The notes below the pieces were generated by a model. The model saw nothing but the letters and a program-made list of their open reading frames with translations, made no database searches and had not been told where the DNA came from. From Auanema rhodensis (Eukaryota > Animalia > Nematoda), in contig OZ059895.1 in NCBI GenBank assembly GCA_964057225.1, positions 1,612,001 through 1,676,000 of the forward strand: a stretch of DNA of 64,000 nt. The letters run 5' to 3'. The stretch's first letter is position 1, and every line of letters starts with the position of its first letter. A program made the translations under genes and the position numbers. Shown in pieces: positions 169 to 64,000 of the stretch.

Positions 169-185
169 GCACCGAGATATCAACT

Positions 186-207: not shown

Positions 208-309
208 CTCGATTTTCACCCTGAAGAAATAATTTTTTCGTTGAATAACATTGTCCATCGGCTTTGCCTTGAAAAAAGGAATCTAAAAACATCTACTTTT
301 TGCTAAATT

Positions 310-344
310 ATTTTGAAATTTTTCGAAAAAATTTTTGTCAAAAT
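310..344. other. Intra-monomer dyad 4: TTTTTCGAAAAA palindrome flanked by ATTTTGA/TCAAAAT in an A/T-tract-rich segment
   Basis: 12-bp perfect palindrome at 319-330; 7-bp outer arms at 310-316 and 338-344. Confidence 0.8.
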
Positions 345-37200: not shown

Positions 37201-40200
37201 TTTTGGAAGCAATGTTGAGTGTACATGGAAACTCAACATACACTAATGCATCATTTTTCAAACGATCATAACTAATTTTTGTATTAAGCGTTTCTCAATG
37301 TAGTATAATGCATTCGATGCGGATTTTTAAGCTGCGTCGATCTGTCTTATCAGATTTGCGCTAGCTTAAAAATGCACCGAGATATCAACTGATATAAGTT
37401 AACACTTATATCCTCGATTTTCACCCTGAAGAAATAATTTTTTCGTTGAATAACATTGTCTATCGTCTTTGCCTTGAAAAATGGAATCTAAAAACATCTA
37501 CTTTTTGCTAAATTATTTTGAAATTTTTCGAAAAAATTTTTGTCAAAATGTTTTTGGAAGCAATGTTGAGTGTACATGGAAACTCAACATACACTAATGC
37601 ATCATTTTTCAAACGATCATAACTAATTTTTGTATCAAGCGTTTCTCAATGTAGTATAGTGCATTCGATGCGGATTTTTAAGCTGCGTCGATCTGTCTTA
37701 TCAGATTTGCGCTAGCTTAAAAATGCACCGAGATATCAACTGATATAAGTTCACACTCATATCCTCGATTTTCACACTGAAGAATTAATTTTTTCGTTGA
37801 ATAACATTGTCTATCGTCTTTGCCTTGAAAAATGGAATCTAAAAACATCTACTTTTTGCTAAATTATTTTGAAATTTTTCGAAAAAATTTTTGTCAAAAT
37901 GTTTTTGGAAGCAATGTTGAGTGTACATGGAAACTCAACATACACTAATGCATCATTTTTCAAACGATCATAACTAATTTTTGTATTAAGCGTTTCTCAA
38001 TGTAGTATAGTGCATTCGATGCGGATTTTTAAGCTGCGTCGATCTGTGTTATCAGATTTGCGCTAGCTTAAAAATGCACCGAGATATCAACTGATATAAG
38101 TTCACACTTATATCCTCGATTTTCACCCTGAAGAAATAATTTTTTCGTTGAATAACATTGTCCATCGTCTTTGCCTTGAAAAAAGGAATCTAAAAACATC
38201 TACTTTTTGCTAAATTATTTTGAAATTTTTCGAAAAAATTTTTGTCAAAATGTTTTTGGAAGCAATGTTGAGTGTACATGGAAACTCAACATACACTAAT
38301 GCATCATTTTTCAAACGATCATAACTAATTTTTGTATTAAGCGTTTCTCAATGTAGTATAGTGCATTCGATGCGGATTTTTAAGCTGCGTCGATCTGTGT
38401 TATCAGATTTGCGCTAGCTTAAAAATGCACCGAGATATCAACTGATATAAGTTCACACTTATATCCTCGATTTTCACCCTGAAGAAATAATTTTTTCGTT
38501 GAATAACATTGTCCATCGTCTTTGCCTTGAAAAAAGGAATCTGAAAACATCTACTTTTTGCTAAATTATTCTGAAATTTTTCGAAAAAATTTTTGTCAAA
38601 ATGTTTTTGGAAGCAATGTTGAGTGTACATGGAAACTCAACATACACTAATGCATCATTTTTCAAACGATCATAACTAATTTTTGTATTAAGCGTTTCTC
38701 AATGTAGTATAGTGCATTCGATGCGGATTTTTAAGCTGCGTCGATCTGTGTTATCAGATTTGCGCTAGCTTAAAAATGCACCGAGATATCAACTGATATA
38801 AGTTCACACTTATATCCTCGATTTTCACCCTGAAGAAATAATTTTTTCGTTGAATAACATTGTCCATCGTCTTTGCCTTGAAAAAAGGAATCTAAAAACA
38901 TCTACTTTTTGCTAAATTATTTTGAAATTTTTCGAAACAATTTTTGTCAAAATGTTTTTGGAAGCAATGTTGAGTGTACATGGAAACTCAACATACACTA
39001 ATGCATCATTTTTCAAACGATCATAACTTATTTTTGTATCAAGCGTTTCTCAATGTAGTATAGTGCATTCGATGCGGATTTTTAAGCTGCGTCGATCTGT
39101 GTTATCAGATTTGCGCTAGCTTAAAAATGCACCGAGATATCAACTGATATAAGTTCACACTTATATCCTCGATTTTCACCCTGAAGAAATAATTTTTTCG
39201 TTGAATAACATTGTCCATCGTCTTTGCCTTGAAAAAAGGAATCTAAAAACATCTACTTTTTGCTAAATTATTTTGAAATTTTTCGAAACAATTTTTGTCA
39301 AAATGTTTTTGGAAGCAATGTTGAGTGTACATGGAAACTCAACATACACTAATGCATCATTTTTCAAACGATCATAACTAATTTTTGTATTAAGCGTTTC
39401 TCAATGTAGTATAGTGCATTCGATGCGGATTTTTAAGCTGCGTCGATCTGTGTTATCAGATTTGCGCTAGCTTAAAAATGCACCGAGATATCAACTGATA
39501 TAAGTTCACACTTATATCCTCGATTTTCACACTGAAGAATTAATTTTTTCGTTGAATAACATTGTCTATCGTCTTTGCCTTGAAAAAAGGAATCTAAAAA
39601 CATCTACTTTTTGCTAAATTATTTTGAAATTTTTCGAAAAAATTTTTGTCAAAATGTTTTTGGAAGCAATGTTGAGTGTACATGGAAACTCAACATACAC
39701 TAATGCATCATTTTTCAAACGATCATAACTAATTTTTGTATTAAGCGTTTCTCAATGTAGTATAGTGCATTCGATGCGGATTTTTAAGCTGCGTCGATCT
39801 GTGTTATCAGATTTGCGCTAGCTTAAAAATGCACCGAGATATCAACTGATATAAGTTCACACTTATATCCTCGATTTTCACCCTGAAGAAATAATTTTTT
39901 CGTTGAATAACATTGTCTATCGTCTTTGCCTTGAAAAATGGAATCTAAAAACATCTACTTTTTGCTAAATTATTCTGAAATTTTTCGAAACAATTTTTGT
40001 CAAAATGTTTTTGGAAGCAATGTTGAGTGTACATGGAAACTCAACATACACTAATGCATCATTTTTCAAACGATCATAACTAATTTTTGTATTAAGCGTT
40101 TCTCAATGTAGTATAATGCATTCGATGCGGATTTTTAAGCTGCGTCGATCTGTCTTATCAGATTTGCGCTAGCTTAAAAATGCACCGAGATATCAACTGA

Positions 40201-43200
40201 TATAAGTTAACACTTATATCCTCGATTTTCACCCTGAAGAAATAATTTTTTCGTTGAATAACATTGTCTATCGTCTTTGCCTTGAAAAATGGAATCTAAA
40301 AACATCTACTTTTTGCTAAATTATTTTGAAATTTTTCGAAAAAATTTTTGTCAAAATGTTTTTGGAAGCAATGTTGAGTGTACATGGAAACTCAACATAC
40401 ACTAATGCATCATTTTTCAAACGATCATAACTTATTTTTGTATCAAGCGTTTCTCAATGTAGTATAGTGCATTCGATGCGGATTTTTAAGCTGCGTCGAT
40501 CTGTCTTATCAGATTTGCGCTAGCTTAAAAATGCACCGAGATATCAACTGATATAAGTTCACACTTATATCCTCGATTTTCACACTGAAGAATTAATTTT
40601 TTCGTTGAATAACATTGTCCATCGTCTTTGCCTTGAAAAAAGGAATCTAAAAACATCTACTTTTTGCTAAATTATTTTGAAATTTTTCGAAAAAATTTTT
40701 GTCAAAATGTTTTTGGAAGCAATGTTGAGTGTACATGGAAACTCAACATACACTAATGCATCATTTTTCAAACGATCATAACTAATTTTTGTATTAAGCG
40801 TTTCTCAATGTAGTATAGTGCATTCGATGCGGATTTTTAAGCTGCGTCGATCTGTGTTATCAGATTTGCGCTAGCTTAAAAATGCACCGAGATATCAACT
40901 GATATAAGTTCACACTTATATCCTCGATTTTCACCCTGAAGAAATAATTTTTTCGTTGAATAACATTGTCTATCGTCTTTGCCTTGAAAAATGGAATCTA
41001 AAAACATCTACTTTTTGCTAAATTATTCTGAAATTTTTCGAAACAATTTTTGTCAAAATGTTTTTGGAAGCAATGTTGAGTGTACATGGAAACTCAACAT
41101 ACACTAATGCATCATTTTTCAAACGATCATAACTAATTTTTGTATTAAGCGTTTCTCAATGTAGTATAATGCATTCGATGCGGATTTTTAAGCTGCGTCG
41201 ATCTGTCTTATCAGATTTGCGCTAGCTTAAAAATGCACCGAGATATCAACTGATATAAGTTAACACTTATATCCTCGATTTTCACCCTGAAGAAATAATT
41301 TTTTCGTTGAATAACATTGTCTATCGTCTTTGCCTTGAAAAATGGAATCTAAAAACATCTACTTTTTGCTAAATTATTTTGAAATTTTTCGAAAAAATTT
41401 TTGTCAAAATGTTTTTGGAAGCAATGTTGAGTGTACATGGAAACTCAACATACACTAATGCATCATTTTTCAAACGATCATAACTTATTTTTGTATCAAG
41501 CGTTTCTCAATGTAGTATAGTGCATTCGATGCGGATTTTTAAGCTGCGTCGATCTGTCTTATCAGATTTGCGCTAGCTTAAAAATGCACCGAGATATCAA
41601 CTGATATAAGTTAACACTTATATCCTCGATTTTCACCCTGAAGAATTAATTTTTTCGTTGAATAACATTGTCCATCGTCTTTGCTATGAAAAATGGAATC
41701 TAAAAACATCTACTTTTTGCTAAATTATTTTGAAATTTTTCGAAACAATTTTTGTCAAAATGTTTTTGGAAGCAATGTTGAGTGTACATGGAAACTCAAC
41801 ATACACTAATGCATCATTTTTCAAACGATCATAACTTATTTTTGTATCAAGCGTTTCTCAATGTAGTATAGTGCATTCGATGCGGATTTTTAAGCTGCGT
41901 CGATCTGTGTTATCAGATTTGCGCTAGCTTAAAAATGCACCGAGATATCAACTGATATAAGTTCACACTTATATCCTCGATTTTCACCCTGAAGAAATAA
42001 TTTTTTCGTTGAATAACATTGTCCATCGTCTTTGCCTTGAAAAAAGGAATCTAAAAACATCTACTTTTTGCTAAATTATTTTGAAATTTTTCGAAACAAT
42101 TTTTGTCAAAATGTTTTTGGAAGCAATGTTGAGTGTACATGGAAACTCAACATACACTAATGCATCATTTTTCAAACGATCATAACTAATTTTTGTATTA
42201 AGCGTTTCTCAATGTAGTATAGTGCATTCGATGCGGATTTTTAAGCTGCGTCGATCTGTGTTATCAGATTTGCGCTAGCTTAAAAATGCACCGAGATATC
42301 AACTGATATAAGTTCACACTTATATCCTCGATTTTCACACTGAAGAATTAATTTTTTCGTTGAATAACATTGTCTATCGTCTTTGCCTTGAAAAATGGAA
42401 TCTAAAAACATCTACTTTTTGCTAAATTATTCTGAAATTTTTCGAAACAATTTTTGTCAAAATGTTTTTGGAAGCAATGTTGAGTGTACATGGAAACTCA
42501 ACATACACTAATGCATCATTTTTCAAACGATCATAACTAATTTTTGTATTAAGCGTTTCTCAATGTAGTATAATGCATTCGATGCGGATTTTTAAGCTGC
42601 GTCGATCTGTCTTATCAGATTTGCGCTAGCTTAAAAATGCACCGAGATATCAACTGATATAAGTTAACACTTATATCCTCGATTTTCACCCTGAAGAAAT
42701 AATTTTTTCGTTGAATAACATTGTCTATCGTCTTTGCCTTGAAAAATGGAATCTAAAAACATCTACTTTTTGCTAAATTATTTTGAAATTTTTCGAAAAA
42801 ATTTTTGTCAAAATGTTTTTGGAAGCAATGTTGAGTGTACATGGAAACTCAACATACACTAATGCATCATTTTTCAAACGATCATAACTTATTTTTGTAT
42901 CAAGCGTTTCTCAATGTAGTATAGTGCATTCGATGCGGATTTTTAAGCTGCGTCGATCTGTCTTATCAGATTTGCGCTAGCTTAAAAATGCACCGAGATA
43001 TCAACTGATATAAGTTAACACTTATATCCTCGATTTTCACCCTGAAGAATTAATTTTTTCGTTGAATAACATTGTCCATCGTCTTTGCTATGAAAAATGG
43101 AATCTAAAAACATCTACTTTTTGCTAAATTATTTTGAAATTTTTCGAAACAATTTTTGTCAAAATGTTTTTGGAAGCAATGTTGAGTGTACATGGAAACT

Positions 43201-46200
43201 CAACATACACTAATGCATCATTTTTCAAACGATCATAACTTATTTTTGTATCAAGCGTTTCTCAATGTAGTATAGTGCATTCGATGCGGATTTTTAAGCT
43301 GCGTCGATCTGTGTTATCAGATTTGCGCTAGCTTAAAAATGCACCGAGATATCAACTGATATAAGTTCACACTTATATCCTCGATTTTCACCCTGAAGAA
43401 ATAATTTTTTCGTTGAATAACATTGTCCATCGTCTTTGCCTTGAAAAAAGGAATCTAAAAACATCTACTTTTTGCTAAATTATTTTGAAATTTTTCGAAA
43501 CAATTTTTGTCAAAATGTTTTTGGAAGCAATGTTGAGTGTACATGGAAACTCAACATACACTAATGCATCATTTTTCAAACGATCATAACTAATTTTTGT
43601 ATTAAGCGTTTCTCAATGTAGTATAGTGCATTCGATGCGGATTTTTAAGCTGCGTCGATCTGTGTTATCAGATTTGCGCTAGCTTAAAAATGCACCGAGA
43701 TATCAACTGATATAAGTTCACACTTATATCCTCGATTTTCACACTGAAGAATTAATTTTTTCGTTGAATAACATTGTCTATCGTCTTTGCCTTGAAAAAA
43801 GGAATCTAAAAACATCTACTTTTTGCTAAATTATTTTGAAATTTTTCGAAAAAATTTTTGTCAAAATGTTTTTGGAAGCAATGTTGAGTGTACATGGAAA
43901 CTCAACATACACTAATGCATCATTTTTCAAACGATCATAACTAATTTTTGTATTAAGCGTTTCTCAATGTAGTATAGTGCATTCGATGCGGATTTTTAAG
44001 CTGCGTCGATCTGTGTTATCAGATTTGCGCTAGCTTAAAAATGCACCGAGATATCAACTGATATAAGTTCACACTTATATCCTCGATTTTCACCCTGAAG
44101 AAATAATTTTTTCGTTGAATAACATTGTCTATCGTCTTTGCCTTGAAAAATGGAATCTAAAAACGTCTACTTTTTGCTAAATTATTCTGAAATTTTTCGA
44201 AACAATTTTTGTCAAAATGTTTTTGGAAGCAATGTTGAGTGTACATGGAAACTCAACATACACTAATGCATCATTTTTCAAACGATCATAACTAATTTTT
44301 GTATTAAGCGTTTCTCAATGTAGTATAATGCATTCGATGCGGATTTTTAAGCTGCGTCGATCTGTCTTATCAGATTTGCGCTAGCTTAAAAATGCACCGA
44401 GATATCAACTGATATAAGTTAACACTTATATCCTCGATTTTCACCCTGAAGAAATAATTTTTTCGTTGAATAACATTGTCTATCGTCTTTGCCTTGAAAA
44501 ATGGAATCTAAAAACATCTACTTTTTGCTAAATTATTTTGAAATTTTTCGAAAAAATTTTTGTCAAAATGTTTTTGGAAGCAATGTTGAGTGTACATGGA
44601 AACTCAACATACACTAATGCATCATTTTTCAAACGATCATAACTTATTTTTGTATCAAGCGTTTCTCAATGTAGTATAGTGCATTCGATGCGGATTTTTA
44701 AGCTGCGTCGATCTGTCTTATCAGATTTGCGCTAGCTTAAAAATGCACCGAGATATCAACTGATATAAGTTCACACTTATATCCTCGATTTTCACACTGA
44801 AGAATTAATTTTTTCGTTGAATAACATTGTCCATCGTCTTTGCCTTGAAAAAAGGAATCTAAAAACATCTACTTTTTGCTAAATTATTTTGAAATTTTTC
44901 GAAAAAATTTTTGTCAAAATGTTTTTGGAAGCAATGTTGAGTGTACATGGAAACTCAACATACACTAATGCATCATTTTTCAAACGATCATAACTAATTT
45001 TTGTATTAAGCGTTTCTCAATGTAGTATAGTGCATTCGATGCGGATTTTTAAGCTGCGTCGATCTGTGTTATCAGATTTGCGCTAGCTTAAAAATGCACC
45101 GAGATATCAACTGATATAAGTTCACACTTATATCCTCGATTTTCACCCTGAAGAAATAATTTTTTCGTTGAATAACATTGTCTATCGTCTTTGCCTTGAA
45201 AAATGGAATCTAAAAACATCTACTTTTCGCTAAATTATTCTGAAATTTTTCGAAACAATTTTTGTCAAAATGTTTTTGGAAGCAATGTTGAGTGTACATG
45301 GAAACTCAACATACACTAATGCATCATTTTTCAAACGATCATAACTAATTTTTGTATTAAGCGTTTCTCAATGTAGTATAATGCATTCGATGCGGATTTT
45401 TAAGCTGCGTCGATCTGTCTTATCAGATTTGCGCTAGCTTAAAAATGCACCGAGATATCAACTGATATAAGTTAACACTTATATCCTCGATTTTCACCCT
45501 GAAGAAATAATTTTTTCGTTGAATAACATTGTCTATCGTCTTTGCCTTGAAATTGGAATCTAAAAACATCTACTTTTTGCTAAATTATTTTGAAATTTTT
45601 CGAAAAAATTTTTGTCAAAATGTTTTTGGAAGCAATGTTGAGTGTACATGGAAACTCAACATACACTAATGCATCATTTTTCAAACGATCATAACTTATT
45701 TTTGTATCAAGCGTTTCTCAATGTAGTATAGTGCATTCGATGCGGATTTTTAAGCTGCGTCGATCTGTCTTATCAGATTTGCGCTAGCTTAAAAATGCAC
45801 CGAGATATCAACTGATATAAGTTAACACTTATATCCTCGATTTTCACCCTGAAGAATTAATTTTTTCGTTGAATAACATTGTCCATCGTCTTTGCCTTGA
45901 AAAATGGAATCTAAAAACATCTACTTTTTGCTAAATTATTTTGAAATTTTTCGAAAAAATTTTTGTCAAAATGTTTTTGGAAGCAATGTTGAGTGTACAT
46001 GGAAACTCAACATACACTAATGCATCATTTTTCAAACGATCATAACTAATTTTTGTATTCAGCGTTTCTCAATGTAGTATAGTGCATTCGATGCGGATTT
46101 TTAAGCTGCGTCGATCTGTGTTATCAGATTTGCGCTAGCTTAAAAATGCACCGAGATATCAACTGATATAAGTTCACACTTATATCCTCGATTTTCACCC

Positions 46201-49200
46201 TGAAGAAATAATTTTTTCGTTGAATAACATTGTCTATCGTCTTTGCCTTGAAAAATGGAATCTAAAAACATCTACTTTTTGCTAAATTATTCTGAAATTT
46301 TTCGAAACAATTTTTGTCAAAATGTTTTTGGAAGCAATGTTGAGTGTACATGGAAACTCAACATACACTAATGCATCATTTTTCAAACGATCATAACTAA
46401 TTTTTGTATTAAGCGTTTCTCAATGTAGTATAATGCATTCGATGCGGATTTTTAAGCTGCGTCGATCTGTCTTATCAGATTTGCGCTAGCTTAAAAATGC
46501 ACCGAGATATCAACTGATATAAGTTAACACTTATATCCTCGATTTTCACCCTGAAGAAATAATTTTTTCGTTGAATAACATTGTCTATCGTCTTTGCCTT
46601 GAAAAATGGAATCTAAAAACATCTACTTTTTGCTAAATTATTTTGAAATTTTTCGAAAAAATTTTTGTCAAAATGTTTTTGGAAGCAATGTTGAGTGTAC
46701 ATGGAAACTCAACATACACTAATGCATCATTTTTCAAACGATCATAACTTATTTTTGTATCAAGCGTTTCTCAATGTAGTATAGTGCATTCGATGCGGAT
46801 TTTTAAGCTGCGTCGATCTGTCTTATCAGATTTGCGCTAGCTTAAAAATGCACCGAGATATCAACTGATATAAGTTAACACTTATATCCTCGATTTTCAC
46901 ACTGAAGAATTAATTTTTTCGTTGAATAACATTGTCTATCGTCTTTGCCTTGAAAAAAGGAATCTAAAAACATCTACTTTTTGCTAAATTATTTTGAAAT
47001 TTTTCGAAAAAATTTTTGTCAAAATGTTTTTGGAAGCAATGTTGAGTGTACATGGAAACTCAACATACACTAATGCATCATTTTTCAAACGATCATAACT
47101 AATTTTTGTATCAAGCGTTTCTCAATGTAGTATAGTGCATTCGATGCGGATTTTTAAGCTGCGTCGATCTGTCTTATCAGATTTGCGCTAGCTTAAAAAT
47201 GCACCGAGATATCAACTGATATAAGTTCACACTCATATCCTCGATTTTCACACTGAAGAATTAATTTTTTCGTTGAATAACATTGTCTATCGTCTTTGCC
47301 TTGGAAAATGGAATCTAAAAACATCTACTTTTTGCTAAATTATTTTGAAATTTTTCGAAAAAATTTTTGTCAAAATGTTTTTGGAAGCAATGTTGAGTGT
47401 ACATGGAAACTCAACATACACTAATGCATCATTTTTCAAACGATCATAACTTATTTTTGTATCGAGCGTTTCTCAATGTAGTATAGTGCATTCGATGCGG
47501 ATTTTTAAGCTGCGTCGATCTGTGTTATCAGATTTGCGCTAGCTTAAAAATGCACCGAGATATCAACTGATATAAGTTAACACTTATATCCTCGATTTTC
47601 ACCCTGAAGAAATAATTTTTTCGTTGAATAACATTGTCCATCGTCTTTGCCTTGAAAAAAGGAATCTAAAAACATCTACTTTTTGCTAAATTATTTTGAA
47701 ATTTTTCGAAAAAATTTTTGTCAAAATGTTTTTGGAAGCAATGTTGAGTGTACATGGAAACTCAACATACACTAATGCATCATTTTTCAAACGATCATAA
47801 CTAATTTTTGTATTAAGCGTTTCTCAATGTAGTATAGTGCATTCGATGCGGATTTTTAAGCTGCGTCGATCTGTGTTATCAGATTTGCGCTAGCTTAAAA
47901 ATGCACCGAGATATCAACTGATATAAGTTCACACTTATATCCTCGATTTTCACCCTGAAGAAATAATTTTTTCGTTGAATAACATTGTCCATCGTCTTTG
48001 CCTTGAAAAAAGGAATCTAAAAACATCTACTTTTTGCTAAATTATTTTGAAATTTTTCGAAAAAATTTTTGTCAAAATGTTTTTGGAAGCAATGTTGAGT
48101 GTACATGGAAACTCAACATACACTAATGCATCATTTTTCAAACGATCATAACTAATTTTTGTATTAAGCGTTTCTCAATGTAGTATAGTGCATTCGATGC
48201 GGATTTTTAAGCTGCGTCGATCTGTGTTATCAGATTTGCGCTAGCTTAAAAATGCACCGAGATATCAACTGATATAAGTTCACACTTATATCCTCGATTT
48301 TCACCCTGAAGAAATAATTTTTTCGTTGAATAACATTGTCCATCGTCTTTGCCTTGAAAAAAGGAATCTGAAAACATCTACTTTTTGCTAAATTATTCTG
48401 AAATTTTTCGAAAAAATTTTTGTCAAAATGTTTTTGGAAGCAATGTTGAGTGTACATGGAAACTCAACATACACTAATGCATCATTTTTCAAACGATCAT
48501 AACTAATTTTTGTATTAAGCGTTTCTCAATGTAGTATAGTGCATTCGATGCGGATTTTTAAGCTGCGTCGATCTGTGTTATCAGATTTGCGCTAGCTTAA
48601 AAATGCACCGAGATATCAACTGATATAAGTTCACACTTATATCCTCGATTTTCACCCTGAAGAAATAATTTTTTCGTTGAATAACATTGTCCATCGTCTT
48701 TGCCTTGAAAAAAGGAATCTAAAAACATCTACTTTTTGCTAAATTATTTTGAAATTTTTCGAAACAATTTTTGTCAAAATGTTTTTGGAAGCAATGTTGA
48801 GTGTACATGGAAACTCAACATACACTAATGCATCATTTTTCAAACGATCATAACTTATTTTTGTATCAAGCGTTTCTCAATGTAGTATAGTGCATTCGAT
48901 GCGGATTTTTAAGCTGCGTCGATCTGTGTTATCAGATTTGTGCTAGCTTAAAAATGCACCGAGATATCAACTGATATAAGTTCACACTTATATCCTCGAT
49001 TTTCACCCTGAAGAAATAATTTTTTCGTTGAATAACATTGTCCATCGTCTTTGCCTTGAAAAAAGGAATCTAAAAACATCTACTTTTTGCTAAATTATTT
49101 TGAAATTTTTCGAAACAATTTTTGTCAAAATGTTTTTGGAAGCAATGTTGAGTGTACATGGAAACTCAACATACACTAATGCATCATTTTTCAAACGATC

Positions 49201-52200
49201 ATAACTAATTTTTGTATTAAGCGTTTCTCAATGTAGTATAGTGCATTCGATGCGGATTTTTAAGCTGCGTCGATCTGTGTTATCAGATTTGCGCTAGCTT
49301 AAAAATGCACCGAGATATCAACTGATATAAGTTCACACTTATATCCTCGATTTTCACACTGAAGAATTAATTTTTTCGTTGAATAACATTGTCTATCGTC
49401 TTTGCCTTGAAAAAAGGAATCTAAAAACATCTACTTTTTGCTAAATTATTTTGAAATTTTTCGAAAAAATTTTTGTCAAAATGTTTTTGGAAGCAATGTT
49501 GAGTGTACATGGAAACTCAACATACACTAATGCATCATTTTTCAAACGATCATAACTAATTTTTGTATTAAGCGTTTCTCAATGTAGTATAGTGCATTCG
49601 ATGCGGATTTTTAAGCTGCGTCGATCTGTGTTATCAGATTTGCGCTAGCTTAAAAATGCACCGAGATATCAACTGATATAAGTTCACACTTATATCCTCG
49701 ATTTTCACCCTGAAGAAATAATTTTTTCGTTGAATAACATTGTCCATCGTCTTTGCCTTGAAAAAAGGAATCTGAAAACATCTACTTTTTGCTAAATTAT
49801 TCTGAAATTTTTCGAAAAAATTTTTGTCAAAATGTTTTTGGAAGCAATGTTGAGTGTACATGGAAACTCAACATACACTAATGCATCATTTTTCAAACGA
49901 TCATAACTAATTTTTGTATTAAGCGTTTCTCAATGTAGTATAGTGCATTCGATGCGGATTTTTAAGCTGCGTCGATCTGTGTTATCAGATTTGCGCTAGC
50001 TTAAAAATGCACCGAGATATCAACTGATATAAGTTCACACTTATATCCTCGATTTTCACCCTGAAGAAATAATTTTTTCGTTGAATAACATTGTCCATCG
50101 TCTTTGCCTTGAAAAAAGGAATCTAAAAACATCTACTTTTTGCTAAATTATTTTGAAATTTTTCGAAACAATTTTTGTCAAAATGTTTTTGGAAGCAATG
50201 TTGAGTGTACATGGAAACTCAACATACACTAATGCATCATTTTTCAAACGATCATAACTTATTTTTGTATCAAGCGTTTCTCAATGTAGTATAGTGCATT
50301 CGATGCGGATGTTTAAGCTGCGTCGATCTGTGTTATCAGATTTGCGCTAGCTTAAAAATGCACCGAGATATCAACTGATATAAGTTCACACTTATATCCT
50401 CGATTTTCACCCTGAAGAAATAATTTTTTCGTTGAATAACATTGTCCATCGTCTTTGCCTTGAAAAAAGGAATCTAAAAACATCTACTTTTTGCTAAATT
50501 ATTTTGAAATTTTTCGAAACAATTTTTGTCAAAATGTTTTTGGAAGCAATGTTGAGTGTACATGGAAACTCAACATACACTAATGCATCATTTTTCAAAC
50601 GATCATAACTTATTTTTGTATCAAGCGTTTCTCAATGTAGTATAGTGCATTCGATGCGGATTTTTAAGCTGCGTCGATCTGTGTTATCAGATTTGCGCTA
50701 GCTTAAAAATGCACCGAGATATCAACTGATATAAGTTCACACTTATATCCTCGATTTTCACCCTGAAGAAATAATTTTTTCGTTGAATAACATTGTCCAT
50801 CGTCTTTGCCTTGAAAAAAGGAATCTAAAAACATCTACTTTTTGCTAAATTATTTTGAAATTTTTCGAAACAATTTTTGTCAAAATGTTTTTGGAAGCAA
50901 TGTTGAGTGTACATGGAAACTCAACATACACTAATGCATCATTTTTCAAACGATCATAACTAATTTTTGTATTAAGCGTTTCTCAATGTAGTATAGTGCA
51001 TTCGATGCGGATTTTTAAGCTGCGTCGATCTGTGTTATCAGATTTGCGCTAGCTTAAAAATGCACCGAGATATCAACTGATATAAGTTCACACTTATATC
51101 CTCGATTTTCACACTGAAGAATTAATTTTTTCGTTGAATAACATTGTCTATCGTCTTTGCCTTGAAAAAAGGAATCTAAAAACATCTACTTTTTGCTAAA
51201 TTATTTTGAAATTTTTCGAAAAAATTTTTGTCAAAATGTTTTTGGAAGCAATGTTGAGTGTACATGGAAACTCAACATACACTAATGCATCATTTTTCAA
51301 ACGATCATAACTAATTTTTGTATTAAGCGTTTCTCAATGTAGTATAGTGCATTCGATGCGGATTTTTAAGCTGCGTCGATCTGTGTTATCAGATTTGCGC
51401 TAGCTTAAAAATGCACCGAGATATCAACTGATATAAGTTCACACTTATATCCTCGATTTTCACCCTGAAGAAATAATTTTTTCGTTGAATAACATTGTCT
51501 ATCGTCTTTGCCTTGAAAAATGGAATCTAAAAACATCTACTTTTTGCTAAATTATTCTGAAATTTTTCGAAACAATTTTTGTCAAAATGTTTTTGGAAGC
51601 AATGTTGAGTGTACATGGAAACTCAACATACACTAATGCATCATTTTTCAAACGATCATAACTAATTTTTGTATTAAGCGTTTCTCAATGTAGTATAATG
51701 CATTCGATGCGGATTTTTAAGCTGCGTCGATCTGTCTTATCAGATTTGCGCTAGCTTAAAAATGCACCGAGATATCAACTGATATAAGTTAACACTTATA
51801 TCCTCGATTTTCACCCTGAAGAAATAATTTTTTCGTTGAATAACATTGTCTATCGTCTTTGCCTTGGAAAATGGAATCTAAAAACATCTACTTTTTGCTA
51901 AATTATTTTGAAATTTTTCGAAAAAATTTTTGTCAAAATGTTTTTGGAAGCAATGTTGAGTGTACATGGAAACTCAACATACACTAATGCATCATTTTTC
52001 AAACGATCATAACTTATTTTTGTATCAAGCGTTTCTCAATGTAGTATAGTGCATTCGATGCGGATTTTTAAGCTGCGTCGATCTGTCTTATCAGATTTGC
52101 GCTAGCTTAAAAATGCACCGAGATATCAACTGATATAAGTTAACACTTATATCCTCGATTTTCACCCTGAAGAAATAATTTTTTCGTTGAATAACATTGT

Positions 52201-52648
52201 CTATCGTCTTTGCCTTGAAAAATGGAATCTAAAAACATCTACTTTTTGCTAAATTATTTTGAAATTTTTCGAAAAAATTTTTGTCAAAATGTTTTTGGAA
52301 GCAATGTTGAGTGTACATGGAAACTCAACATACACTAATGCATCATTTTTCAAACGATCATAACTTATTTTTGTATCAAGCGTTTCTCAATGTAGTATAG
52401 TGCATTCGATGCGGATTTTTAAGCTGCGTCGATCTGTCTTATCAGATTTGCGCTAGCTTAAAAATGCACCGAGATATCAACTGATATAAGTTAACACTTA
52501 TATCCTCGATTTTCACCCTGAAGAATTAATTTTTTCGTTGAATAACATTGTCCATCGTCTTTGCCTTGAAAAATGGAATCTAAAAACATCTACTTTTTGC
52601 TAAATTATTTTGAAATTTTTCGAAAAAATTTTTGTCAAAATGTTTTTG
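25271..52648 (+). repeat. Local HOR domain built on a 3-mer core (F-G-H) with 6-8-mer blocks
   Basis: TATAATGC-marked monomers (G), each preceded by a TTATTCTG + CGAAACAA monomer (F), lie near 26.07, 31.34, 35.20, 36.25, 37.30, 40.11, 41.17, 42.57, 44.32, 45.38, 46.43 and 51.69 kb. Many spacings are 1053 bp. Confidence 0.8.
31589..35099 (+). repeat. Island of 10 consecutive monomers of a distinct subfamily (AGCTTTTCTC instead of AGCGTTTCTC)
   Basis: The G>T change at monomer pos 85 is present in each monomer from 31589 to 34749 and was not seen elsewhere. Further local SNPs: CGATTATA, AACATCGTC, GTACGTGG. Confidence 0.9.
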
Positions 52649-53745
52649 GAAGCAATGTTGAGTGTACATGGAAACTCAACATACACTAATGCATCATTTT
52701 TCAAACGATCATAACTAATTTTTGTATCAAGCGTTTCTCAATGTAGTATAGTGCATTCGATGCGGATTTTTAAGCTGCGTCGATCTGTCTTATCAGATTT
52801 GCGCTAGCTTAAAAATGCACCGAGATATCAACTGATATAAGTTCACACTCATATCCTCGATTTTCACACTGAAGAATTAATTTTTTCGTTGAATAACATT
52901 GTCTATCGTCTTTGCCTTGGAAAATGGAATCTAAAAACATCTACTTTTTGCTAAATTATATTGAAATTTTTCGAAAAAATTTTTGTCAAAATGTTTTTGG
53001 AAGCAATGTTGAGTGTACATGGAAACTCAACATACACTAATGCATCATTTTTCAAACGATCATAACTTATTTTTGTATCGAGCGTTTCTCAATGTAGTAT
53101 AGTGCATTCGATGCGGATTTTTAAGCTGCGTCGATCTGTGTTATCAGATTTGCGCTAGCTTAAAAATGCACCGAGATATCAACTGATATAAGTTAACACT
53201 TATATCCTCGATTTTCACCCTGAAGAAATAATTTTTTCGTTGAATAACATTGTCCATCGTCTTTGCCTTGAAAAAAGGAATCTAAAAACATCTACTTTTT
53301 GCTAAATTATTTTGAAATTTTTCGAAAAAATTTTTGTCAAAATGTTTTTGGAAGCAATGTTGAGTGTACATGGAAACTCAACATACACTAATGCATCATT
53401 TTTCAAACGATCATAACTAATTTTTGTATCAAGCGTTTCTCAATGTAGTATAGTGCATTCGATGCGGATTTTTAAGCTGCGTCGATCTGTCTTATCAGAT
53501 TTGCGCTAGCTTAAAAATGCACCGAGATATCAACTGATATAAGTTCACACTCATATCCTCGATTTTCACACTGAAGAAATAATTTTTTCGTTGAATAACA
53601 TTGTCTATCGTCTTTGCCTTGAAAAATGGAATCTAAAAACATCTACTTTTTGCTAAATTATTTTGAAATTTTTCGAAAAAATTTTTGTCAAAATGTTTTT
53701 GGAAGCAATGTTGAGTGTACATGGAAACTCAACATACACTAATGC

Positions 53746-54462
53746 GACAATGTTATTCAACGAAAAAATTATTTCTTCAGGGTGAAAATCGAGGATATAA
53801 GTGTGAACTTATATCAGTTGATATCTCGGTGCATTTTTAAGCTAGCGCAAATCTGATAACACAGATCGACGCAGCTTAAAAATCCGCATCGAATGCACTA
53901 TACTACATTGAGAAACGCTTAATACAAAAATTAGTTATGATCGTTTGAAAAATGATGCATTAGTGTATGTTGAGTTTCCATGTACACTCAACATTGCTTC
54001 CAAAAACATTTTGACAAAAATTTTTTCGAAAAATTTCAGAATAATTTAGCAAAAAGTAGATGTTTTTAGATTCCTTTTTTCAAGGCAAAGACGATGGACA
54101 ATGTTATTCAACGAAAAAATTATTTCTTCAGGGTGAAAATCGAGGATATAAGTGTTAACTTATATCAGTTGATATCTCGGTGCATTTTTAAGCTAGCGCA
54201 AATCTGATAACACAGATCGACGCAGCTTAAAAATCCGCATCGAATGCACTATACTACATTGAGAAACGCTTAATACAAAAATTAGTTATGATCGTTTGAA
54301 AAATGATGCATTAGTGTATGTTGAGTTTCCATGTACACTCAACATTGCTTCCAAAAACATTTTGACAAAAATTTTTTCGAAAAATTTCAAAATAATTTAG
54401 CAAAAAGTAGATGTTTTTAGATTCCTTTTTTCAAGGCAAAGACGATGGACAATGTTATTCAA
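53746..54462 (-). repeat. Inverted satellite segment 1 (717 bp = 2 monomers + 15 bp)
   Basis: After ...ACACTAATGC (monomer pos 44) the sequence reads GACAATGTTATTCAACGAAAAAATT..., the reverse complement of the monomer from pos 255 downward. It returns to + orientation at ...TTATTCAA|AGCTGCGTCG (monomer pos 124/125). Confidence 0.97.
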
Positions 54463-55040
54463 AGCTGCGTCGATCTGTGTTATCAGATATGCGCTAGCTT
54501 AAAAATGCACCGAGATATCAACTGATATAAGTTCACACTTATATCCTCGATTTTCACCCTGAAGAATTAATTTTTTCGTTGAATAACATTGTCCATCGTC
54601 TTTGCTTTGAAAAAAGGAATCTAAAAACATCTACTTTTTGCTAAATTATTTTGAAATGTTTCGAAAAAATTTTTGTCAAAATGTTTTTGGAAGTAATGTT
54701 GAGTGTACATGGAAACTCAACATACACTAATGAATCATTTTTCAAACGATCATAACTAATTTTTGTATTAAGCGTTTCTCAATGTAGTATAGTGCATTCG
54801 ATGCGGATTTTTAAGCTGCGTCGATCTGTGTTATCAGATTTGCGCTAGCTTAAAAATGCACCGAGATATCAACTGATATAAGTTCACACTTATATCCTCG
54901 ATTTTCACCCTGAAGAATCATTTTTTTCGTTGAATAACATTGTCCATTGTCTTTGCCTTGAAAAATGAAATCTAAAAACATCTACTTTTTGCTAAATTAT
55001 TTTGAAATTTTTCGAAAAAATTTTTGTCAAAATGTTTTTG

Positions 55041-58000
55041 GAAGCAATGTTGAGTGTACATGGAAACTCAACATACACTAATGAATCATTTTTCAAACGA
55101 TCATAACTAATTTTTGTATTAAGCGTTTCTCAATGTAGTATAGTGCATTCGATCCGGATTTTTAAGCTGCGTCGATCTGTGTTATCAGATTTGCGCTAAC
55201 TTAAAAATGCACCGAGATATCAACTGATATAAGTTCACACTTATATCCTCGATTTTCACCCTGAAGAATTGATTTTTTCGTTGAATAACATTGTCCATCG
55301 TCTTTGCTTTGAAAAATGGAATCTAAAAACATCTACTTTTTGCTAAATTATTTTGAAATTTTTCGAAAAAATTTTTGTCAAAATGTTTTTGGAAGCAATG
55401 TTGAGTGTACATGGAAACTCAACATACACTAATGCATCATTTTTCAAACGATCATAACTAATTTTTGTATTAAGCGTTTCTCAATGTAGTATAGTGCACT
55501 CGATGCGGATTTTTAAGCTGCGTCGATCTGTGTTATCAGATATGCGCTAGCTTAAAAATGCACCGAGATATCAACTGATATAAGTTCACACTTATATCCT
55601 CGATTTTCACCCTGAAGAAATAATTTTTTCGTTGAATAACATTGTCCATCGTCTTTGCCTTGAAAAAAGGAATCTAAAAACATCTACTTTTTGCTAAATT
55701 ATTTTGAAATTTTTCGAAAAAATTTTTATCAAAATGTTTTTGGAAGCAATGTTGAGTGTACATGGAAACTCAACATACACTAATGCATCATTTTTCAAAC
55801 GATCATAACTAATTTTTGTATTAAGCGTTTCTCAATGTAGTATAGTGCATTCGATGCGGATTTTTAAGCTGCGTCGATCTGTGTTATCAGATTTGCGCTA
55901 GCTTAAAAATGCACCGAGATATCAACTGATATAAGTTCACACTTATATCCTCGATTTTCACCCTGAAGAAATAATTTTTTCGTTGAATAACAATGTCCAT
56001 CGTCTTTGCCTTGAAAAAAGGAATCTGAAAACATCTACTTTTTGCTAAATTATTTTGAAATTTTTCGAAAAAATTTTTGTCAAAATGTTTTTGGAAGCAA
56101 TGTTGAGTGTACATGGAAACTCAACATACACTAATGCATCATTTTTCAAACGATCATAACTAATTTTGGTATTAAGCGTTTCTCAATGTAGTATAGTGCA
56201 TTCGATGCGGATTTTTAAGCTGCGTCGATCTGTGTTATCAGATTTGCGCTAGCTTAAAAATGCACCGAGATATCAACTGATATAAGTTAACACTTATATC
56301 CTCGATTTTCACCCTGAAGAAATAATTTTTTCGTTGAATAACATTGTCCATCGTCTTTGTCTTGAAAAAAGGAATCTAAAAACATCTACTTTTTGCTAAA
56401 TTATTTTGAAATTTTTCGAAAAAATTTTTGTCAAAATGTTTTTGGAAGCAATGTTGAGTGTACATGGAAACTCAACATACACTAATGCATCATTTTTCAA
56501 ACGATCATAACTAATTTTTGTATTAAGCGTTTTTCAATGTATAATAGTGCATTCGATGCGGATTTTTAAGCTGCGTCGATCTGTGTTATCAGATTTGCGC
56601 TAGCTTAAAAATGCACCGAGATATCAACTGATATAAGTTCACACATATATCCTCGATTTTCACCCTGAAGAAATAATTTTTTCGTTGAATAACATTGTCC
56701 ATCGTCTTTGCCTTGAAAAAAGGAATCTAAAAACATCTACTTTTTGCTAAATTATTTTGAAATTTTTCGAAAAAATTTTTGTCAAAATGTTTTTGGAAGC
56801 AATGTTGAGTGTACATGGAAACTCAACATACACTAATGAATCATTTTTCAAACGATCATAACTAATTTTTGTATTAAGCGTTTCTCAATGTAGTATAGTG
56901 CATTCGATCCGGATTTTTAAGCTGCGTCGATCTGTGTTATCAGATTTGCGCTAACTTAAAAATGCACCGAGATATCAACTGATATAAGTTCACACTTATA
57001 TCCTCGATTTTCACCCTGAAGAATTGATTTTTTCGTTGAATAACATTGTCCATCGTCTTTGCTTTGAAAAATGGAATCTAAAAACATCTACTTTTTGCTA
57101 AATTATTTTGAAATTTTTCGAAAAAATTTTTGTCAAAATGTTTTTGGAAGCAATGTTGAGTGTACATGGAAACTCAACATACACTAATGCATCATTTTTC
57201 AAACGATCATAACTAATTTTTGTATTAAGCGTTTCTCAATGTAGTATAGTGCACTCGATGCGGATTTTTAAGCTGCGTCGATCTGTGTTATCAGATATGC
57301 GCTAGCTTAAAAATGCACCGAGATATCAACTGATATAAGTTCACACTTATATCCTCGATTTTCACCCTGAAGAAATAATTTTTTCGTTGAATAACATTGT
57401 CCATCGTCTTTGCCTTGAAAAAAGGAATCTAAAAACATCTACTTTTTGCTAAATTATTTTGAAATTTTTCGAAAAAATTTTTATCAAAATGTTTTTGGAA
57501 GCAATGTTGAGTGTACATGGAAACTCAACATACACTAATGCATCATTTTTCAAACGATCATAACTAATTTTTGTATTAAGCGTTTCTCAATGTAGTATAG
57601 TGCATTCGATGCGGATTTTTAAGCTGCGTCGATCTGTGTTATCAGATTTGCGCTAGCTTAAAAATGCACCGAGATATCAACTGATATAAGTTCACACTTA
57701 TATCCTCGATTTTCACCCTGAAGAAATAATTTTTTCGTTGAATAACAATGTCCATCGTCTTTGCCTTGAAAAAAGGAATCTGAAAACATCTACTTTTTGC
57801 TAAATTATTTTGAAATTTTTCGAAAAAATTTTTGTCAAAATGTTTTTGGAAGCAATGTTGAGTGTACATGGAAACTCAACATACACTAATGCATCATTTT
57901 TCAAACGATCATAACTAATTTTGGTATTAAGCGTTTCTCAATGTAGTATAGTGCATTCGATGCGGATTTTTAAGCTGCGTCGATCTGTGTTATCAGATTT

Positions 58001-58550
58001 GCGCTAGCTTAAAAATGCACCGAGATATCAACTGATATAAGTTAACACTTATATCCTCGATTTTCACCCTGAAGAAATAATTTTTTCGTTGAATAACATT
58101 GTCCATCGTCTTTGTCTTGAAAAAAGGAATCTAAAAACATCTACTTTTCGCTAAATTATTTTGAAATTTTTCGAAAAAATTTTTGTCAAAATGTTTTTGG
58201 AAGCAATGTTGAGTGTACATGGAAACTCAACATACACTAATGCATCATTTTTCAAACGATCATAACTAATTTTTGTATTAAGCGTTTTTCAATGTATAAT
58301 AGTGCATTCGATGCGGATTTTTAAGCTGCGTCGATCTGTGTTATCAGATTTGCGCTAGCTTAAAAATGCACCGAGATATCAACTGATATAAGTTCACACA
58401 TATATCCTCGATTTTCACCCTGAAGAAATAATTTTTTCGTTGAATAACATTGTCCATCGTCTTTGCCTTAAAAAAAGGAATCTAAAAACATCTACTTTTT
58501 GCTAAATTATTTTGAAATTTTTCGAAAAAATTTTTGTCAAAATGTTTTTG
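55041..58550 (+). repeat. Tandem duplication of a 5-monomer (1755 bp) block
   Basis: Markers GATCCGG / GTGCACTCG / AACAATGTC / TTTGGTATT / TGTATAATAG appear in the same order at 55041-56795 and 56796-58550. ORFs at 55887 and 57642 are 1755 bp apart. Confidence 0.92.
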
Positions 58551-58945
58551 GAAGCAATGTTGAGTGTACATGGAAACTCAACATACACTAATGCATCATT
58601 TTTCAAACGATCATAACTAATTTTTGTATCAAGCGTTTCTCAATGTAGTATAGTGCATTCGATGCGGATTTTTAAGCTGCGTCGATCTGTCTTATCAGAT
58701 TTGCGCTAGCTTAAAAATGCACCGAGATATCAACTGATATAAGTTCACACTCATATCCTCGATTTTCACACTGAAGAAATAATTTTTTCGTTGAATAACA
58801 TTGTCTATCGTCTTTGCCTTGAAAAATGGAATCTAAAAACATCTACTTTTTGCTAAATTATTTTGAAATTTTTCGAAAAAATTTTTGTCAAAATGTTTTT
58901 GGAAGCAATGTTGAGTGTACATGGAAACTCAACATACACTAATGC

Positions 58946-59662
58946 GACAATGTTATTCAACGAAAAAATTATTTCTTCAGGGTGAAAATCGAGGATATAA
59001 GTGTGAACTTATATCAGTTGATATCTCGGTGCATTTTTAAGCTAGCGCAAATCTGATAACACAGATCGACGCAGCTTAAAAATCCGCATCGAATGCACTA
59101 TACTACATTGAGAAACGCTTAATACAAAAATTAGTTATGATCGTTTGAAAAATGATGCATTAGTGTATGTTGAGTTTCCATGTACACTCAACATTGCTTC
59201 CAAAAACATTTTGACAAAAATTTTTTCGAAAAATTTCAGAATAATTTAGCAAAAAGTAGATGTTTTTAGATTCCTTTTTTCAAGGCAAAGACGATGGACA
59301 ATGTTATTCAACGAAAAAATTATTTCTTCAGGGTGAAAATCGAGGATATAAGTGTTAACTTATATCAGTTGATATCTCGGTGCATTTTTAAGCTAGCGCA
59401 AATCTGATAACACAGATCGACGCAGCTTAAAAATCCGCATCGAATGCACTATACTACATTGAGAAACGCTTAATACAAAAATTAGTTATGATCGTTTGAA
59501 AAATGATGCATTAGTGTATGTTGAGTTTCCATGTACACTCAACATTGCTTCCAAAAACATTTTGACAAAAATTTTTTCGAAAAATTTCAAAATAATTTAG
59601 CAAAAAGTAGATGTTTTTAGATTCCTTTTTTCAAGGCAAAGACGATGGACAATGTTATTCAA
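58946..59662 (-). repeat. Inverted satellite segment 2 (717 bp), copy of segment 1
   Basis: Same junctions and internal SNPs as segment 1, 5200 bp downstream. Confidence 0.97.
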
Positions 59663-62600
59663 AGCTGCGTCGATCTGTGTTATCAGATATGCGCTAGCTT
59701 AAAAATGCACCGAGATATCAACTGATATAAGTTCACACTTATATCCTCGATTTTCACCCTGAAGAATTAATTTTTTCGTTGAATAACATTGTCCATCGTC
59801 TTTGCTTTGAAAAAAGGAATCTAAAAACATCTACTTTTTGCTAAATTATTTTGAAATGTTTCGAAAAAATTTTTGTCAAAATGTTTTTGGAAGTAATGTT
59901 GAGTGTACATGGAAACTCAACATACACTAATGAATCATTTTTCAAACGATCATAACTAATTTTTGTATTAAGCGTTTCTCAATGTAGTATAGTGCATTCG
60001 ATGCGGATTTTTAAGCTGCGTCGATCTGTGTTATCAGATTTGCGCTAGCTTAAAAATGCACCGAGATATCAACTGATATAAGTTCACACTTATATCCTCG
60101 ATTTTCACCCTGAAGAATCATTTTTTTCGTTGAATAACATTGTCCATTGTCTTTGCCTTGAAAAATGAAATCTAAAAACATCTACTTTTTGCTAAATTAT
60201 TTTGAAATTTTTCGAAAAAATTTTTGTCAAAATGTTTTTGGAAGCAATGTTGAGTGTACATGGAAACTCAACATACACTAATGAATCATTTTTCAAACGA
60301 TCATAACTAATTTTTGTATTAAGCGTTTCTCAATGTAGTATAGTGCATTCGATCCGGATTTTTAAGCTGCGTCGATCTGTGTTATCAGATTTGCGCTAAC
60401 TTAAAAATGCACCGAGATATCAACTGATATAAGTTCACACTTATATCCTCGATTTTCACCCTGAAGAATTGATTTTTTCGTTGAATAACATTGTCCATCG
60501 TCTTTGCTTTGAAAAATGGAATCTAAAAACATCTACTTTTTGCTAAATTATTTTGAAATTTTTCGAAAAAATTTTTGTCAAAATGTTTTTGGAAGCAATG
60601 TTGAGTGTACATGGAAACTCAACATACACTAATGCATCATTTTTCAAACGATCATAACTAATTTTTGTATTAAGCGTTTCTCAATGTAGTATAGTGCACT
60701 CGATGCGGATTTTTAAGCTGCGTCGATCTGTGTTATCAGATATGCGCTAGCTTAAAAATGCACCGAGATATCAACTGATATAAGTTCACACTTATATCCT
60801 CGATTTTCACCCTGAAGAAATAATTTTTTCGTTGAATAACATTGTCCATCGTCTTTGCCTTGAAAAAAGGAATCTAAAAACATCTACTTTTTGCTAAATT
60901 ATTTTGAAATTTTTCGAAAAAATTTTTATCAAAATGTTTTTGGAAGCAATGTTGAGTGTACATGGAAACTCAACATACACTAATGCATCATTTTTCAAAC
61001 GATCATAACTAATTTTTGTATTAAGCGTTTCTCAATGTAGTATAGTGCATTCGATGCGGATTTTTAAGCTGCGTCGATCTGTGTTATCAGATTTGCGCTA
61101 GCTTAAAAATGCACCGAGATATCAACTGATATAAGTTCACACTTATATCCTCGATTTTCACCCTGAAGAAATAATTTTTTCGTTGAATAACAATGTCCAT
61201 CGTCTTTGCCTTGAAAAAAGGAATCTGAAAACATCTACTTTTTGCTAAATTATTTTGAAATTTTTCGAAAAAATTTTTGTCAAAATGTTTTTGGAAGCAA
61301 TGTTGAGTGTACATGGAAACTCAACATACACTAATGCATCATTTTTCAAACGATCATAACTAATTTTGGTATTAAGCGTTTCTCAATGTAGTATAGTGCA
61401 TTCGATGCGGATTTTTAAGCTGCGTCGATCTGTGTTATCAGATTTGCGCTAGCTTAAAAATGCACCGAGATATCAACTGATATAAGTTAACACTTATATC
61501 CTCGATTTTCACCCTGAAGAAATAATTTTTTCGTTGAATAACATTGTCCATCGTCTTTGTCTTGAAAAAAGGAATCTAAAAACATCTACTTTTTGCTAAA
61601 TTATTTTGAAATTTTTCGAAAAAATTTTTGTCAAAATGTTTTTGGAAGCAATGTTGAGTGTACATGGAAACTCAACATACACTAATGCATCATTTTTCAA
61701 ACGATCATAACTAATTTTTGTATTAAGCGTTTTTCAATGTATAATAGTGCATTCGATGCGGATTTTTAAGCTGCGTCGATCTGTGTTATCAGATTTGCGC
61801 TAGCTTAAAAATGCACCGAGATATCAACTGATATAAGTTCACACATATATCCTCGATTTTCACCCTGAAGAAATAATTTTTTCGTTGAATAACATTGTCC
61901 ATCGTCTTTGCCTTGAAAAAAGGAATCTAAAAACATCTACTTTTTGCTAAATTATTTTGAAATTTTTCGAAAAAATTTTTGTCAAAATGTTTTTGGAAGC
62001 AATGTTGAGTGTACATGGAAACTCAACATACACTAATGCATCATTTTTCAAACGATCATAACTTATTTTTGTATCAAGCGTTTCTCAATGTAGTATAGTG
62101 CATTCGATGCGGATTTTTAAGCTGCGTCGATCTGTCTTATCAGATTTGCGCTAGCTTAAAAATGCACCGAGATATCAACTGATATAAGTTAACACTTATA
62201 TCCTCGATTTTCACCCTGAAGAATTAATTTTTTCGTTGAATAACATTGTCCATCGTCTTTGCCTTGAAAAATGGAATCTAAAAACATCTACTTTTTGCTA
62301 AATTATTTTGAAATTTTTCGAAAAAATTTTTGTCAAAATGTTTTTGGAAGCAATGTTGAGTGTACATGGAAACTCAACATACACTAATGCATCATTTTTC
62401 AAACGATCATAACTAATTTTTGTATCAAGCGTTTCTCAATGTAGTATAGTGCATTCGATGCGGATTTTTAAGCTGCGTCGATCTGTCTTATCAGATTTGC
62501 GCTAGCTTAAAAATGCACCGAGATATCAACTGATATAAGTTCACACTCATATCCTCGATTTTCACACTGAAGAAATAATTTTTTCGTTGAATAACATTGT

Positions 62601-63092
62601 CCATCGTCTTTGCCTTGAAAAAAGGAATCTAAAAACATCTACTTTTTGCTAAATTATTTTGAAATTTTTCGAAAAAATTTTTGTCAAAATGTTTTTGGAA
62701 GCAATGTTGAGTGTACATGGAAACTCAACATACACTAATGCATCATTTTTCAAACGATCATAACTAATTTTTGTATCAAGCGTTTCTCAATGTAGTATAG
62801 TGCATTCGATGCGGATTTTTAAGCTGCGTCGATCTGTCTTATCAGATTTGCGCTAGCTTAAAAATGCACCGAGATATCAACTGATATAAGTTCACACTCA
62901 TATCCTCGATTTTCACACTGAAGAAATAATTTTTTCGTTGAATAACATTGTCTATCGTCTTTGCCTTGAAAAATGGAATCTAAAAACATCTACTTTTTGC
63001 TAAATTATTTTGAAATTTTTCGAAAAAATTTTTGTCAAAATGTTTTTGGAAGCAATGTTGAGTGTACATGGAAACTCAACATACACTAATGC

Positions 63093-63458
63093 GACAATGT
63101 TATTCAACGAAAAAATTATTTCTTCAGGGTGAAAATCGAGGATATAAGTGTGAACTTATATCAGTTGATATCTCGGTGCATTTTTAAGCTAGCGCAAATC
63201 TGATAACACAGATCGACGCAGCTTAAAAATCCGCATCGAATGCACTATACTACATTGAGAAACGCTTAATACAAAAATTAGTTATGATCGTTTGAAAAAT
63301 GATGCATTAGTGTATGTTGAGTTTCCATGTACACTCAACATTGCTTCCAAAAACATTTTGACAAAAATTTTTTCGAAAAATTTCAGAATAATTTAGCAAA
63401 AAGTAGATGTTTTTAGATTCCTTTTTTCAAGGCAAAGACGATGGACAATGTTATTCAA
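63093..63458 (-). repeat. Inverted satellite segment 3 (366 bp = 1 monomer + 15 bp)
   Basis: Same left and right junctions as segments 1 and 2 but exactly 351 bp shorter; starts 4147 bp after segment 2. Confidence 0.97.
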
Positions 63459-64000
63459 AGCTGCGTCGATCTGTGTTATCAGATATGCGCTAGCTTAAAA
63501 ATGCACCGAGATATCAACTGATATAAGTTCACACTTATATCCTCGATTTTCACCCTGAAGAATTAATTTTTTCGTTGAATAACATTGTCCATCGTCTTTG
63601 CTTTGAAAAAAGGAATCTAAAAACATCTACTTTTTGCTAAATTATTTTGAAATGTTTCGAAAAAATTTTTGTCAAAATGTTTTTGGAAGTAATGTTGAGT
63701 GTACATGGAAACTCAACATACACTAATGAATCATTTTTCAAACGATCATAACTAATTTTTGTATTAAGCGTTTCTCAATGTAGTATAGTGCATTCGATGC
63801 GGATTTTTAAGCTGCGTCGATCTGTGTTATCAGATTTGCGCTAGCTTAAAAATGCACCGAGATATCAACTGATATAAGTTCACACTTATATCCTCGATTT
63901 TCACCCTGAAGAATCATTTTTTTCGTTGAATAACATTGTCCATTGTCTTTGCCTTGAAAAATGAAATCTAAAAACATCTACTTTTTGCTAAATTATTTTG

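Follow-up and report, generated by a model that had tools for sequence, protein, structure and literature searches.

The satellite array

The window, a stretch of 64,000 nucleotides of the Auanema rhodense germline assembly (C3:1612001-1676000), lies within tandemly repeated DNA with a 351-bp unit. Positions are those of the window unless a chromosome is named. The first feature is the array itself:

1..53745, plus strand: 351-bp satellite array of ~153 monomers (Tandem Repeats Finder: period 351, 153.1 copies, 98% matches)

A monomer BLAST map of uninterrupted contig (C3:1582001-1716000) gives at least 134 kb of plus-strand array, which contains no N and is broken only by three minus-strand segments. 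Across these 134 kb, monomers differ from each other by 2.04% on average, and 15% of neighbouring pairs differ at two sites or fewer.

The A. rhodense germline assembly was produced from PacBio HiFi and Hi-C data and comprises 180.9 Mb with seven chromosome scaffolds; the autosomes carry multi-megabase blocks of tandem repeats at both ends, and these are eliminated from somatic cells (bioRxiv 10.64898/2026.08.27.747507). Genome-wide counts given here refer to 180,911,798 bases in 112 contigs. The canonical 32-mer of the 351-bp monomer has 120,818 occurrences in the whole assembly; from this count the family has ~121,000 copies, or ~42 Mb (23% of the assembly). It is present towards both ends of C1 and C7, and also on C3, C4 and C6. 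The published 28-nt FISH probe for the satellite AT-1 has 138,553 matches in the assembly (at most one mismatch), with 176-bp spacing, which identifies the genome as that of A. rhodense. These ~139,000 probe sites correspond to ~24 Mb of AT-1; together, the two satellites would make up more than one third of the germline assembly. The 351-bp unit is not a dimer of the 176-bp satellite, as it has no internal direct repeat and the AT-1 probe is absent from the window. It probably represents the second autosome-terminal repeat of the A. rhodense paper, AT-2; the text of that paper states neither a unit length for AT-2 nor where elimination begins. A literature search for a '351 bp' satellite returned nothing relevant. 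The region of the window is most likely germline-restricted DNA, part of a chromosome-end satellite block of the kind discarded from body cells. Nematodes of this group have diffuse (holocentric) centromeres; for both of these reasons CENH3, which had been suggested as a check, is a weak fit to the locus.

Inverted inserts and their junctions

Tandem Repeats Finder places breaks in the 351-bp array at 53746, 54462, 58946, 59662 and 63093. Insert positions were taken from these breaks and from the monomer BLAST map, units were compared directly between sequences, and breakpoints were walked base by base. The inserts and their junctions are as follows:

53746..54462, minus strand: inverted insert, copy 1 (717 bp = 2 x 351 + 15; monomer BLAST map)
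58946..59662, minus strand: inverted insert, copy 2 (717 bp, same sequence as copy 1)
63093..63458, minus strand: inverted insert, copy 3 (366 bp = 351 + 15; one inverted monomer fewer)
53730..53761, plus strand: left junction, forward position 44 of the monomer joined blunt to reverse-complement position 255
58930-58961 and 63077-63108: further copies of the left junction (identical 32-mer)
54448..54479, plus strand: right junction, where reverse-complement position 241 meets forward position 124 and one A is shared
59648-59679 and 63444-63475: further copies of the right junction (identical 32-mer)

The general formula of the insert is n x 351 + 15 bp of 351-bp satellite. Copy 1 starts in reverse at monomer position 255, reads to 1, passes through one complete monomer (351 to 1) and finishes with positions 351 to 241; the 15-mer GACAATGTTATTCAA is common to both insert ends. 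The copy 3 insert ends in 111 bp that are identical to the opening 111 bp of the middle monomer in copy 1. At the insertion site ~79 bp of the target (monomer positions 45-123) are gone; the net gain per insertion is thus 287 bp or 638 bp. The ancestral insert may have been either 366 or 717 bp long.

An earlier note on this DNA had placed inverted segments with base-identical junctions at 53746, 58946 and 63093, and the repeat finder, the BLAST map and the junction 32-mers all bear this out. It had also described them as the same segment three times, which is accurate for copies 1 and 2; copy 3 is the shorter form. The junction k-mer count that it had proposed gives exactly three occurrences of each 32-mer in the 180.9-Mb assembly, on C3 only and all within the window. 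Further junction copies with up to two mismatches are absent from the whole assembly. Both junctions are identical in all three copies and are found nowhere else; the rearrangement therefore has a single origin.

The overlap at the joins is 0 bp on the left and 1 bp on the right. An in-place inversion is ruled out, since the breakpoints are not reciprocal (44/255 and 241/124) and ~79 bp have been replaced by 366 or 717 bp. These features identify the cassette as an inverted insertion or the product of a double template switch. It is not a transposable element: the insert is pure 351-bp satellite, and the interval 52000-64000 contains no ORF of 80 or more amino acids and no match to an Rfam family. 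With its flanks the cassette forms inverted repeats with arms of up to 717 bp and spacers of 116-140 bp. A fold-back or inverted duplication of adjacent sequence would give an exact reverse complement of the flank; the insert is 98% complementary to its present flanks, which does not support such an origin. The best forward matches of the insert lie 5-24 kb upstream in the same array, with one or two mismatches.

The monomer contains short dyad symmetries, for example 7-20/21-34 and 118-128/158-168 (in the monomer at window positions 1-351). Three of the four cassette breakpoints are within about 15 bp of such a symmetry; there are six symmetries in 351 bp, so this may be chance.

Structure of the units

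Distinct monomer sequences were labelled by type number (T), with INV and INV' standing for the inverted inserts. The units and the main features within them can then be written as follows:

Unit 1: [T120 T135 T130] T136-INV-T141 T142 (T143-T147)(T143 T144 T145 T148 T149)
Unit 2: T136-INV-T141 T142 (T143-T147) T120 T150
Unit 3: T136-INV'-T141 T142 T143 T144 ...
53271..56838, plus strand: exact 3568-bp duplicate carrying the cassette, equal to 58471-62038; the longest exact repeat in 134 kb
55041..58550, plus strand: five-monomer duplication within unit 1 (blocks 55041-56795 and 56796-58550; two sites differ)
62347..62697, plus strand: hybrid monomer T150 (positions 1-220 as in monomer 52649-52999, positions 229-351 as in monomer 53000-53350)

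By monomer type, all three copies have a common upstream monomer and the same four downstream monomers. At base level, copy 3 is identical to copies 1 and 2 over 526 bp upstream, over its insert, and over 1530 bp downstream; this shared core contains no substitutions among the three copies. Successive inserts are separated by 5200 and 4147 bp, neither of them divisible by 351, and each insert shifts the 351-bp register of the array; the arithmetic 228 + n x 351 + 44 + 716 fits both distances, with n = 12 and n = 9. The common upstream monomer, the downstream series, the periods with their register shifts and the unequal monomer numbers had all been read from the letters beforehand, and each stands. 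The conclusion drawn from them then, that one rearrangement was propagated by duplication of the block that carries it, is also supported.

T148 differs from T146, and T149 from T147, at one site each. Unit 1 is three monomers longer than unit 2 because of the five-monomer duplication and the loss of one monomer. The tail of unit 2 consists of the same monomers that precede unit 1, and within it T150 is made up of T135 at positions 1-220 and T130 at positions 229-351, a clean two-parent composition. This hybrid marks an in-register unequal crossover by which one monomer was lost upstream of copy 3. The forward monomers between cassettes are all contiguous and in register, and differ in number between units. 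Homology to one block explains every base between cassettes; given this homology of the monomer strings and the clean hybrid, everything between cassettes derives from one block, with joins in register.

Some features of a higher-order repeat (HOR) are present. Each unit has 10-13 distinct monomer types plus the cassette, and identity is greater between units than within them (0 differences in 3568 bp between units 1 and 2, versus 2.04% between monomers). A long, homogeneous series of units is not found: the units number three and vary in length, and each junction has three occurrences in the assembly.

Origin and spread of the cassette

A single insertion, followed by spread through ordinary in-register unequal exchange, is the likely explanation of the triplication. 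The structure was read from the assembly sequence alone, and we infer the repair pathway and the order of events from it. The initial event would have been a break, or stalled copying, in the plus-strand 351-bp array, repaired by insertion of a backwards piece of satellite. This piece would have comprised one or two monomers plus 15 bp, with the loss of ~79 bp (positions 45-123). A fragment of satellite may have been captured by end joining, or replication may have switched template twice; overlaps of 0 and 1 bp fit either route.

Two tandem duplications of the scar-bearing block would then have followed, through in-register unequal exchange among monomers that had misaligned. This may have been exchange between sister chromatids or homologues, or replication slippage; it is the process by which the array as a whole is reshuffled. 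In the simplest history, a first duplication, of the block from T120 to T147 (~11-12 monomer lengths, ~4.1-4.5 kb), would have produced unit 3 and the ancestor of units 1 and 2. A second and very recent duplication, of the stretch from T136 to T147, would have separated units 1 and 2. The five-monomer duplication inside unit 1 would have followed, together with changes of one monomer each, both upstream of copy 3 and within its inverted part. The nematode mutation rate is ~2.5e-9 per site per generation; at this rate, with 0 differences in 3568 bp, the most recent duplication probably dates from within the last ~2e5 generations. While the shared core stayed free of substitutions, its neighbourhood went through at least two duplications, gained five monomers once and changed twice by a single monomer. 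In-register exchange therefore alters copy number at this locus faster than point mutation alters the sequence.

Duplication across the surrounding array

Duplication is common throughout the array. There are 530 exact direct repeats of at least 400 bp in the 134 kb, with lags of 3 to 58 monomers, and 52% of the 134 kb lies within exact repeats of at least 1 kb. Repeats that are free of the inversion reach 3245 bp (2 mismatches), 2890 bp (1), 2541 bp (1) and 2318 bp (0). Two of the inversion-free duplications, in window-equivalent positions, are:

63730-66619 = 66538-69427, plus strand: duplication with a lag of eight monomers and 1 mismatch in 2890 bp (its start, 63730..64000, is in the window)
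89427-97143: eight-monomer block in three tandem copies (lag ~2805 bp, exact stretches of 1.8-2.3 kb)

The three-copy block at 89427-97143 is an inversion-free counterpart of the cassette triplication. Two monomers with 1-bp indels (17551-17900 and 21411-21760) are in one duplicated block with a lag of 3860 bp, so that the indel was copied along with its block; two further monomers of this kind (all four are 350 or 352 bp long) are found at 31940-32291 and 45279-45628.

Another explanation, which we consider unlikely, is that the cassette promotes its own amplification. The inverted repeat that it forms with its flanks would stall replication or break, leading to repeated local unequal exchange and an incipient HOR. 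In such a case the inverted patch would be a local fragile site, whose hairpin-prone repeats provoke germline breaks or fork stalling and whose misaligned repair duplicates the block again, a role that is improbable here. If it were true, an inversion scar would be seeding a new mixed-orientation repeat unit in DNA that is later discarded from body cells. At 3568 bp, the exact duplication that carries the cassette is longer than any other in the 134 kb (2318 bp for the next exact one), and a small cassette-specific effect is therefore conceivable, although this length falls within the range of the other repeats. In addition, both junctions have long inverted arms beside them, and the 2.9-kb duplication begins just to the right of copy 3. 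However, there are three copies only, genome-wide. Coverage by exact repeats of at least 1 kb is 0.71-0.80 in bins around the cassette versus 0.66-0.85 in several inversion-free bins, the bins next to its surroundings are just as rich in such repeats, and inversion-free blocks reach three copies too. The amplification of the cassette is not special relative to the rest of the array. Among many ordinary local duplications, this one can be recognised by its inversion; nothing shows that the inversion drives them.

These results alter three statements of the earlier note. It had seen a new HOR being amplified; what exists is three units at one locus, among ~121,000 monomers. It had ranked the structure as the most unusual in the window, a position which the many exact repeats, the inversion-free blocks of up to 3245 bp and the second three-copy block do not favour. 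Continuation to the right, which it had considered possible, is not found: the next 40 kb rightward are uninterrupted plus-strand array, and the assembly holds no further copy of the junctions.

Insertion and unequal exchange must also be weighed against the possibility that the assembler falsely expanded one real cassette into three tandem copies. The satellite here is 98% self-similar, no difference separates copies 1 and 2 over 3568 bp, and germline-restricted repeat blocks have only ~29-fold HiFi coverage (bioRxiv 10.64898/2026.08.27.747507). Against this, length sets the units apart (5200 versus 4147 bp), as do insert size (717 versus 366 bp) and several flanking monomers, among them the hybrid; the 134 kb contain neither N nor a scaffold gap. 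The whole triplet spans ~12 kb, a length that typical HiFi reads cover. Most reads are reported to map uniquely in these repeats (bioRxiv 10.64898/2026.08.27.747507). The argument that internal differences speak against an artefact, made from the letters earlier, is strengthened by the continuity of the contig; an artefact is distinctly unlikely, though it keeps a small share of the probability.

Gene conversion could have copied the cassette into related blocks that already existed, with no tandem duplication of a block. Conversion, too, would be expected to leave sharply bounded identical tracts and, downstream of the copies, mosaic patterns. It is nevertheless very improbable: the full distance between cassettes consists of the duplicated block itself, and each conversion event would have to carry a net insertion of 287 or 638 bp along with at least 2 kb of flanking sequence. 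Three independent inversions at a breakage hotspot are hardly credible and in practice refuted by the base-level identity of the three copies, which covers the two junctions and no less than 2.4 kb of flanks. In favour of a hotspot, an unrelated 351-bp array on C7 stops at monomer position 43, a single base away from the left breakpoint, but this C7 junction is found only two times.

Comparison with other repeats

In the classical model, HORs in satellite DNA are formed by unequal crossing-over. The structure described here resembles such repeats in its multi-monomer unit, in units that are 100% alike versus ~98% between monomers, in in-register exchange, and in the hybrid monomer. It differs in that there are three units only, of unequal lengths, and in that the array has not been homogenised.

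Inverted insertions and duplications are known to arise via microhomology-mediated template switching (FoSTeS/MMBIR-type repair) or by end-joining capture. The cassette has much in common with these: two novel joins with 0-1 bp of overlap, inverted sequence of a type found nearby, and a small target deletion. It differs in that its reversed sequence does not exactly match the flanks it now has, so that a fold-back onto adjacent DNA is not supported.

Satellites of Tribolium freemani and T. madens have conserved inversion sites, or 'cassettes', in which monomers switch strand at abrupt joins; these join types have thousands of copies on several chromosomes and form kilobase-scale mirror-image arrays (PMC12581902, PMC13081366). 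The A. rhodense cassette is similar in that the strand switches at abrupt joins of truncated monomers without foreign DNA, and in that one join type has spread together with its flanks, with a variable number of monomers from one join to the next. It differs in having three copies at one locus and a reversed part of only 0.4-0.7 kb. It does not represent a genome-wide conserved inversion site of the Tribolium type, as the junction is found only on C3, at three sites in the window. Strand switches in repeats are not mentioned in the A. rhodense paper (bioRxiv 10.64898/2026.08.27.747507).

The cassette is a marker of ordinary repeat turnover; it is neither a new spreading structure nor a new mechanism. 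It provides a unique, base-resolved barcode in a satellite that makes up roughly a quarter of the germline assembly, and could mark satellite turnover between strains or lines. Its bearing on programmed DNA elimination is by location only.

Other loci of the 351-bp family

Strand switches are absent from 27 other 351-bp loci of ~3 kb each, a small sample in which many loci overlap. On C7, a minus-strand 351-bp array ends at monomer position 43 (C7:17012488-17012519 and C7:16979647-16979678), one base off the position of the cassette's left breakpoint, and is followed by non-tandem, AT-rich DNA for 1.15 kb or more. The idea of a hotspot for breakage, or of a site-specific element, at monomer position 43/44 was rejected, given that the C7 junction is found only twice and its flank is without a convincing ORF. 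The two occurrences of this edge are 32.8 kb apart, which suggests a large duplication on C7. On C1, canonical 32-mers only 60 bp apart (C1:2813542 and C1:2813602) point to an irregular or rearranged monomer.
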